A stretch of 64,000 bases of DNA from Thalia democratica. Taxonomy: Eukaryota. The notes under the pieces are model-generated. The model ran no database searches. It saw nothing but the letters and a program-made list of their open reading frames with translations, and had not been told where the DNA came from. The translations under genes were made by a program, and so were the position numbers. The DNA is taken from NCBI GenBank assembly GCA_965202585.1, contig OZ241832.1, forward strand, positions 31,868,001 through 31,932,000, written 5' to 3'. Below are positions 21,212 to 21,305 of this stretch, in pieces. Numbering within the stretch: the first letter of the stretch is position 1; each line of letters begins with the position of its first letter.

Positions 21212-21305
21212 CCGACTGGACCTGCTGCTCCGGCCAATCTTTCCAAATCGAGTCCGGTCATCAAAACGTAAACCCCGTTGCCGAGGCCTCCGAGCACATT
21301 TGAGG
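21212..21305 (-). CDS. IVD: IVD exon 7b (alternative): (A)[31 protein letters not shown]
   Basis: 94 bp, tcttatag acceptor, GG|gtaaac donor, phase 1 to 2, no stops. Confidence 0.9.

Follow-up and report, generated by a model that had tools for sequence, protein, structure and literature searches.

In this study, we found that exon 7 of an isovaleryl-CoA dehydrogenase (IVD) gene from Thalia democratica is present as a genuine cluster of mutually exclusive copies, 7a, 7b and 7c, of which 7a and 7c are spliced. The gene lies in a 64,000-nucleotide stretch of contig OZ241832.1, here called the window. With moderate confidence, we read the cluster as a set of alternatives under regulated splicing, in which the variant copies 7a and 7b would give an active ACAD with a deeper pocket and a shifted substrate range. 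One gene would probably yield a second enzyme specificity in this way.

A complete IVD gene in the window

The window is AT-rich eukaryotic DNA (about 26% GC), and no Rfam matches were found in it. From open stretches and junction reading, a complete IVD gene was located on the minus strand, running from 36438 to 17017 with 10 exon positions. These are exon 1 (36438-36292), exon 2 (34188-34047), exon 3 (30690-30521), exon 4 (30023-29930), exon 5 (23655-23560), exon 6 (23111-22980), the exon 7 cluster with its three copies, exon 8 (19247-19166), exon 9 (17751-17574) and exon 10 (17150-17017), which ends at the stop. The internal exon borders are AG/GT throughout. Two short duplications were observed beside these exons: the acceptor of exon 8 and the 17 nt behind it recur 86 nt upstream (19316-19354), and a second copy of the 3'-terminal 25 nt of exon 5 lies 90 nt downstream (23467-23491).

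The constitutive exons carry the N, M and C domains of the ACAD superfamily, with Pfam matches to PF02771 in exons 2 and 3, to PF02770 in exons 5 and 6, and to PF00441 in exons 9 and 10. The top PDB matches were IVD entries, with other ACADs far behind. Exon 3 scored 73-79 bits against IVD and at most 38 bits against other ACADs, and exon 10 scored 60-66 bits and at most 34 bits, respectively. The features of the IVD subfamily were also found, namely the helix-G Glu254 in GLDLER, in all three exon 7 copies, and Gly-Ala at 374/375, the position of the MCAD-type base. Alignment of exon 10 to residues 352-390 of human IVD (1IVH) placed the Gly374-Ala375 equivalents, the IVD hallmark that leaves room for the branch, in YEIGAGT of this constitutive exon (17077..17082, minus strand). 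Alignment of exon 3, also constitutive, to residues 70-123 of 1IVH matched query residue 28, a Leu in IALSYG (30605..30607, minus strand), to Leu95, the partner of Leu258 in the pocket barrier. The codon coordinates of both sites were computed from the in-frame start of the respective exon. These results indicate that the gene product is mitochondrial isovaleryl-CoA dehydrogenase.

Three tandem copies of exon 7

The three copies lie on the minus strand at 22128-22035 (7a), 21305-21212 (7b) and 20381-20288 (7c). Each is 94 nt long, in identical phase, with an AG acceptor and a GT donor. The copies are thus neighbouring homologs that match in length and phase and have intact splice sites, as expected of mutually exclusive exons. 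Any single copy gave an intact 422-aa protein, and this was the case for each of the three isoforms. When exon 7 was skipped, or when two or three copies were included, the in-silico joins ran into a premature stop. Since a 94-nt exon breaks the frame when it is skipped or used more than once, exclusivity is enforced at least by the reading frame.

Exons 7a and 7b are part of a tandem duplication of ~823 bp that includes the downstream intron, which argues that the three copies did not arise by chance. The two paralogous introns of the cluster (within 20382..22034, minus strand) measure 729 nt between 7a and 7b and 830 nt between 7b and 7c, and are ~76% identical. They are what remains of the ~823-bp duplication that made 7a and 7b, and 7b is a young duplicate of 7a.

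A partial fourth copy was also observed at 22276-22240 (minus strand), where only the 5' 37 nt of the exon are present behind an AG. Together with an inverted repeat of its start, which follows immediately, it forms a self-complementary segment at 22229..22276 (minus strand; CAAATGTGCTTG...CAAGCACATTTG). The segment is predicted to fold into a hairpin of ~17-20 bp, 100 nt upstream of 7a, and the predicted MFE of the region is -33 kcal/mol over a 111-nt stretch. With a single mismatch, the antisense arm of the hairpin could also base-pair to the 5' 12 nt of 7a or 7b. This element may be a decoy, a regulatory element or a mere rearrangement scar.

The variant copies change residues assigned to the pocket floor

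Exon 7 corresponds to residues 233-264 of 1IVH, the helix carrying the catalytic base. The original prediction named the Glu of GLDLERL as Glu254 and stated that all three copies keep it. Alignment of 7a, 7b and 7c to residues 234-263 of 1IVH confirmed both points, and the Glu254 codon was located at 22066-22064 in 7a, 21243-21241 in 7b and 20319-20317 in 7c. The residue four positions further on, 258, is Leu in human IVD and in 7c (codon 20307-20305), and Gly in 7a (22054-22052) and 7b (21231-21229). Reading of the exons also upheld the motifs that had been proposed, ERLLLS in 7c, ERLAGA in 7b and ERLGGA in 7a. Residues 257-258 (Val/Leu-Leu) are therefore Gly-Gly in 7a and Ala-Gly in 7b. The segment 21212-21245 of the window is the 3' end of exon 7b and reads E-R-L-A-G-A-A-G-P-V-G, followed by the GT donor.

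The variant exon changes 13 of its 32 residues, and the differences thus extend beyond 257 and 258. Ser249 is replaced by Thr, and the 239-244 loop is altered. The corresponding claim of a change from MSG to MTG together with a loop change was correct, the loop being GPYNDG in 7c and GG[VL]GNG in the variants at equal length. Ser249 and this loop adjoin the CoA-contacting residues Met248, Asp252 and Arg255.

A previous cryo-EM study of human IVD reported that L127 and L290 (mature Leu95 and Leu258) constitute a barrier at the pocket's bottom against chains of at least C7, that G406/A407 give space for the branch, and that M280, D284 and R287 of the exon 7 segment contact CoA (PMC12369846). Residue 258, which had been described as lining the acyl cavity, is therefore a published half of the chain-length barrier. 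In this study, we found that the constitutive exons and all exon 7 isoforms together keep Leu95, Gly374/Ala375, Glu254 and Arg255. The Leu95 and Leu258 pair that limits the pocket to C4-C6 acyl groups is present with 7c and is lost with 7a and 7b, which carry Gly258.

Based on these residues, we propose that 7c, as the default last copy, would give canonical IVD. The upstream copies would give a 422-aa enzyme that is identical outside exon 7 and has Gly-Gly (7a) or Ala-Gly (7b) at 257/258 of the pocket floor. The variant exon would remove the helix-G half of the barrier only. Since Leu95, Gly374/Ala375, Glu254 and Arg255 are kept, the variant is most likely an active ACAD whose pocket is deeper and whose substrate range is shifted. 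As originally suggested, the 7a and 7b isoforms may accept branched acyl-CoAs that are longer or bulkier. With Leu95 still in place, the opening of the pocket may be partial, and two glycines immediately behind the catalytic Glu-Arg-Leu could make helix G less stable and reduce activity instead of changing specificity. The idea of a specificity switch is well motivated. The data show how the cluster is built, that 7a and 7c are spliced, that coding constraint acts and what rule holds at residue 258, and we infer catalytic competence, altered specificity, the use of 7b and the regulation of exon choice.

Exons 7a and 7c are spliced

Public runs were compared with window 19100-23200. Of these, X7 has the character of an RNA library from this species, and X3-X6 are metatranscriptomes, of which the marine sets X4 and X5 derive from one environmental sample. 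In X7, exon depth was 350-950 and intron depth was near zero. The only joints in this library were exon 6 to 7c and 7c to exon 8 (GT..AG). These 7c joints, from 22980 to 20381 and from 20288 to 19247, had a depth of 577-957 in X7 and were present in X3-X6 too. Neither 7a nor 7b was covered in X7 (7a zero, 7c depth about 990).

In X4, a contig joined exon 6 to 7a exactly at 22980 to 22128 (depth 33.5), and further contigs joined 7a to exon 8 exactly at 22035 to 19247 (depths of 31 and 8). One 129-nt contig of X5, with a depth of 8, covered 12 nt of exon 6, 7a and 26 nt of exon 8. The contigs bearing 7a are short, with flanks of 12-30 nt. The 7c form had a depth of 169 in X4 and 48 in X5, and from these contig depths 7a stands at roughly 15% of the 7c form and makes up about 1/6 to 1/7 of the transcripts in X4/X5. 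The expressed 7a allele differed from the reference at 4-5 positions, all synonymous (identity ~96% within 7a). In X3 and X6, 7c alone was found, without the 7a form. No spliced 7b was found in the five RNA data sets (X3-X7), and one low-depth unspliced contig touched 7b. Among the joints listed there was no double inclusion, and the 7a and 7c mRNAs each carry exactly one copy. The original prediction of splice-switched 7a and 7b thus held for 7a, which is spliced between exons 6 and 8, and no spliced form of 7b was seen.

At the protein level, word-index searches and an exhaustive HMMER search returned no transcript-derived protein with the variant exon, only genomic ORF fragments. This is expected, as isoforms merge in 50%/90% identity clusters and full-length proteins exceed the candidate length limits.

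Two further runs, X1 and X2, are DNA-like, with even depth across introns and exons and two haplotypes ~7% apart in introns. The animal is marine, and its genome is highly heterozygous. X1 and X2 also hold intronless exon 6-7c-8 contigs at single-copy depth (about 36). These contigs have several synonymous differences in the last 20 nt of 7c and show the same variant as the RNA in X3. They may represent a processed (retro)copy or an intron-less IVD paralog elsewhere in the genome.

Coding constraint on the variant exons

Exons 7a and 7b differ at 10 of 94 positions, with 8 synonymous and 2 nonsynonymous changes (dN/dS 0.08). When the substitutions were placed at random, two or fewer amino-acid changes arose in 1.8% of trials (permutation P=0.018) and a stop codon arose in 31% of trials. 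Between 7a/7b and 7c, the synonymous sites are saturated, yet GVYVLM.GLDLERL and GPVG are kept. Between species, pN/pS was 0.12-0.25 for the variant exon and 0.17-0.31 for the canonical exon. These results indicate that coding constraint maintains 7a and 7b and that, between species, the canonical exon is no more constrained than the variant exon.

Exon 7 clusters in other organisms

An exhaustive HMMER search with the 7a peptide, contig look-ups and a metagenome scan gave 93 loci. Exon 7 clusters were found in eight further organisms, represented by L001, L002 (= L003, L012, L014), L004, L005 (= L006, L007), L008, L089, L090 (= L091, L092) and L093. The extra copies read ERLGGAAG in L001 and L093, ERLGACAG in L002, ERTLGSAG and ERVFASSG in L004, ERVLGAAG in L005, ERGAGAAA in L089 and ERGAGAAG in both L008 and L090. 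The last copies read ERLVLSSG in L001, ERLVLSAG in L002 and L004, ERLVLASG in L093, ERAILAAG in L005 and ERCVLAAG in L089. In L008 and L090, the last copy falls beyond the end of a short contig, and L008 also has a truncated copy (ERAVVAAM) upstream of its variant. Complete copies are 94 nt long, with AG..GT borders where checked (L093 by eye). Wherever a full cluster sits on the contig, the extra copies are upstream and the canonical copy is last.

Among the 11 distinct extra copies, 9 carry Gly and 2 carry Ala at residue 258, and the last copy of every complete cluster has Leu there. The 76 single-copy loci have Leu (72), Ile (2), Cys (1) or Phe (1) at this position. The enrichment of a small residue 258 in extra over single-copy exons gave a Fisher p=1.4e-13 with the 10 extra copies then known, which are not phylogenetically independent. 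A small residue at 258 is the sole change common to all 11 extra copies.

The variant exons fall into three types that differ from one another at Ser/Thr249 and in the loop, and masking residues 257 and 258 did not abolish the grouping by type across organisms. Type 1 comprises 7a and 7b of the window and the variants of L001 and L002, with L093 of the same type by sequence. Type 2 comprises the first variant of L004 and the variant of L005, and type 3 those of L008, L089 and L090. Judging from this grouping, variant exons of one type are orthologous across organisms. The alternative copy is thus conserved, with orthologs in L001, L002 and L093 and analogous clusters in L004, L005, L008, L089 and L090. 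At least three other organisms, with IVDs that are 74-90% identical, also have this variant exon. The closest relative, L093, is roughly 65-93% identical in well-aligned constitutive exons and has one variant exon. The split of 7a and 7b is therefore recent, and the variant exon itself is old, so that 7a and 7b represent a late re-duplication of it in this lineage.

Tentatively, and with rather less confidence than we place in the reading for the window gene, we suggest that several invertebrate lineages have an ancient or repeatedly evolved splice switch in their single IVD gene, in which Leu258 is replaced by Gly or Ala to give a second ACAD specificity. The variant may there replace a medium- or branched-chain ACAD that is separately encoded in vertebrates. 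If this is true, the three variant types either go back to a single, very old exon or arose convergently, three times over, in answer to one biochemical need.

Two of these loci have a particular structure. In L005 (5082-7084 and 8954-12135; also in L006), two IVD-like genes lie in tandem. The upstream gene has a single exon 7 (ERAFLAAG), and the downstream gene has the variant and canonical pair, which indicates that gene duplication and exon duplication coexist there. The first copy in L005 had been considered as a third alternative exon, and this was rejected because it belongs to the separate tandem paralog. In L004 (81-324), the first two exon 7 copies are just 56 nt apart, a spacer that is probably too short to splice as an intron. 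A steric route to mutual exclusivity may therefore apply in L004, and it is absent in the window. Logan contigs P0042-P0045, which are related to L004, show allelic indels in this 56-nt spacer.

Control of exon choice

The variant isoform would be made under regulated, condition- or tissue-specific splicing, and we examined the cluster for known routes of control. For docking/selector RNA pairing, the 62 nt upstream of each copy were compared with the other introns, and RNAduplex gave z values of -2.4 to +1.5 relative to shuffles, with no pairing beyond the shuffled controls. No conserved intron element was found against the closest relative L093, as the exons alone align. The cluster has no U12-type splice sites, its donors being GTAAAA, GTAAAC and GTTGGT. 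An unspliceably short intron, which steric hindrance requires, is absent from the window, where the introns measure 729 and 830 nt.

Several features beside the splice sites were observed. The donors of exons 1, 2, 6, 8, 9 and 7c are mostly GTTTGT, GTTGGT or GTTTGC, with T at +3, and those of 7a (GTAAAA) and 7b (GTAAAC) differ from them. The difference between these donors might influence exon choice, and the T at +3 may also be a trait of the genome. The pyrimidine tract of the 7b acceptor is poorer than that of 7a. An array of three to four copies of an ~18-nt motif, TAATATGTCGGGTATGTG, each with GGG, follows the 7c donor at a distance of 30-170 nt (20120-20260, minus strand), and no such array was found after 7a or 7b. 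It could act as an intronic splicing enhancer for 7c as the default exon.

Alternative explanations

The inclusion of 7a and 7b could be splicing noise, or the 6-7a-8 contigs could come from another organism or a paralog, leaving the extra copies without function. The positive contigs are indeed metatranscriptomic, with flanks of 12-30 nt obtained at a lax identity setting, and the species' own library X7 lacks 7a. However, in two runs both junctions coincide exactly with the predicted splice sites, the flanking sequence belongs to exons 6 and 8 of the window IVD gene, and 7a is ~96% identical with synonymous changes only. The variant exon is also under purifying selection in at least 8 other organisms, and a functionless exon would not stay open and motif-perfect through synonymous saturation. 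We regard this explanation as very improbable, as it is largely refuted by the exact junctions, the gene-matching flanks and the conservation across organisms. For 7b alone the case is closer, and it is quite possible, if somewhat doubtful, that 7b is a young duplicate without use, either on its way to a pseudo-exon or present as a spare, and that 7a and 7c are the only real alternatives. Spliced 7b was absent from all five RNA data sets, whereas 7a was seen, L093 has one variant exon only, and the acceptor of 7b is poorer in pyrimidines than that of 7a. Yet its AG/GT borders and open frame are intact, 8 synonymous against 2 nonsynonymous changes have accumulated since the duplication although 31% of random placements would have made a stop, and contig data lose rare forms. 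The same reading was rejected for 7a on the RNA and constraint evidence.

A different possibility is that the variant exon is functional in a role other than chain length or bulk. It could affect the rate of catalysis, the pKa of Glu254 or its placement, the binding of CoA, stability, or the properties of mixed tetramers. The exon alters 13 of 32 residues and not just 257 and 258, the CoA contacts M280, D284 and R287 lie in its segment (PMC12369846), and purifying selection shows function without saying which. This is nevertheless unlikely in our view, because the three variant types differ in the loop and at Ser/Thr249, and only the small residue 258, the published chain-length determinant, is common to 11/11 extra copies. 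We therefore retain the shift in substrate range as the preferred reading.

Comparison with known systems

Mutually exclusive homologous exons occur in metabolic enzymes, as in exons 9/10 of PKM. Tandem-duplicated exon substitutions of this kind have been catalogued in human and fly genes (PMC9741552, PMC8373072, PMC9013439), and OGDH exons 4a/4b are a further metabolic case (PMC7969005). The window cluster resembles them in its adjacent homologous exons of equal length and phase, in the use of one copy per mRNA with exclusivity enforced by the frame, in isoforms sharing all but the homologous segment, and in an ancient event under purifying selection. It differs from the described cases in that the gene is IVD and the segment is the helix with the catalytic base and the pocket floor. 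No docking/selector pairing of the Dscam type was found for it, its splice sites are not U12-type and its introns are not short. A full-text search found no literature linking IVD or ACADs with mutually exclusive or tandem-duplicated exons. The kind of event is well known, and the gene, the segment and the conserved swap of Leu258 appear to be undescribed.

Compared with human IVD (1IVH; cryo-EM 8SGR/9JQ3), the 7c isoform keeps Glu254, Leu95/Leu258, Gly374-Ala375 and the ACAD N, M and C domains. The segment is one single exon in the human gene, whereas in the window the 7a and 7b isoforms put Gly-Gly and Ala-Gly, respectively, in place of Val257-Leu258. VLCAD is an ACAD whose cavity is widened by small residues. 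LCAD (ACADL) has the catalytic Glu on helix G as in IVD, and its cavity is enlarged partly by small Cys, Ser and Gly residues (PMC10925408). Unlike the window variants, LCAD widens its cavity mainly by a Pro-induced unwinding of helix E rather than at residue 258 of helix G, and is a separate member of the gene family. Potato 2-methylbutyryl-CoA dehydrogenase is cited as an evolutionary derivative of IVD (Goetzman et al. 2005, J Biol Chem 280:4873; cited in PMC4010797). On that cited account, the potato enzyme is an IVD scaffold that keeps the catalytic Glu of helix G and has been adapted to a different acyl-CoA, short or branched, and in this the window variants would resemble it. The potato enzyme, as cited, came from a whole-gene duplication, whereas the window has a one-exon duplication with alternative splicing.

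The range of ACAD substrates has so far been explained by gene duplication. Here, the duplication of one exon, combined with alternative splicing, appears to achieve this within the very helix that bears the catalytic base. Gly/Ala258 in 11/11 extra copies against 0/76 single-copy genes amounts to a natural mutagenesis of the proposed barrier residue, and the barrier proposed for IVD from cryo-EM in 2025 is directly testable with the three natural isoforms. Invertebrate IVD annotation probably misses an isoform, which bears on the reconstruction of branched-chain amino-acid and lipid catabolism in marine animals.

Other features of the window

Outside the IVD gene, two paralogous secreted Lys-rich proteins were observed at 9186-13727 (plus strand) and 42096-43754 (minus strand). 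The former continues into a 30-nt (decapeptide) repeat of about 118 units, several frames of which are open. At 60493-61332 (plus strand), ORF fragments give the impression, from their sequence, of a hAT/ZBED-type transposase remnant.
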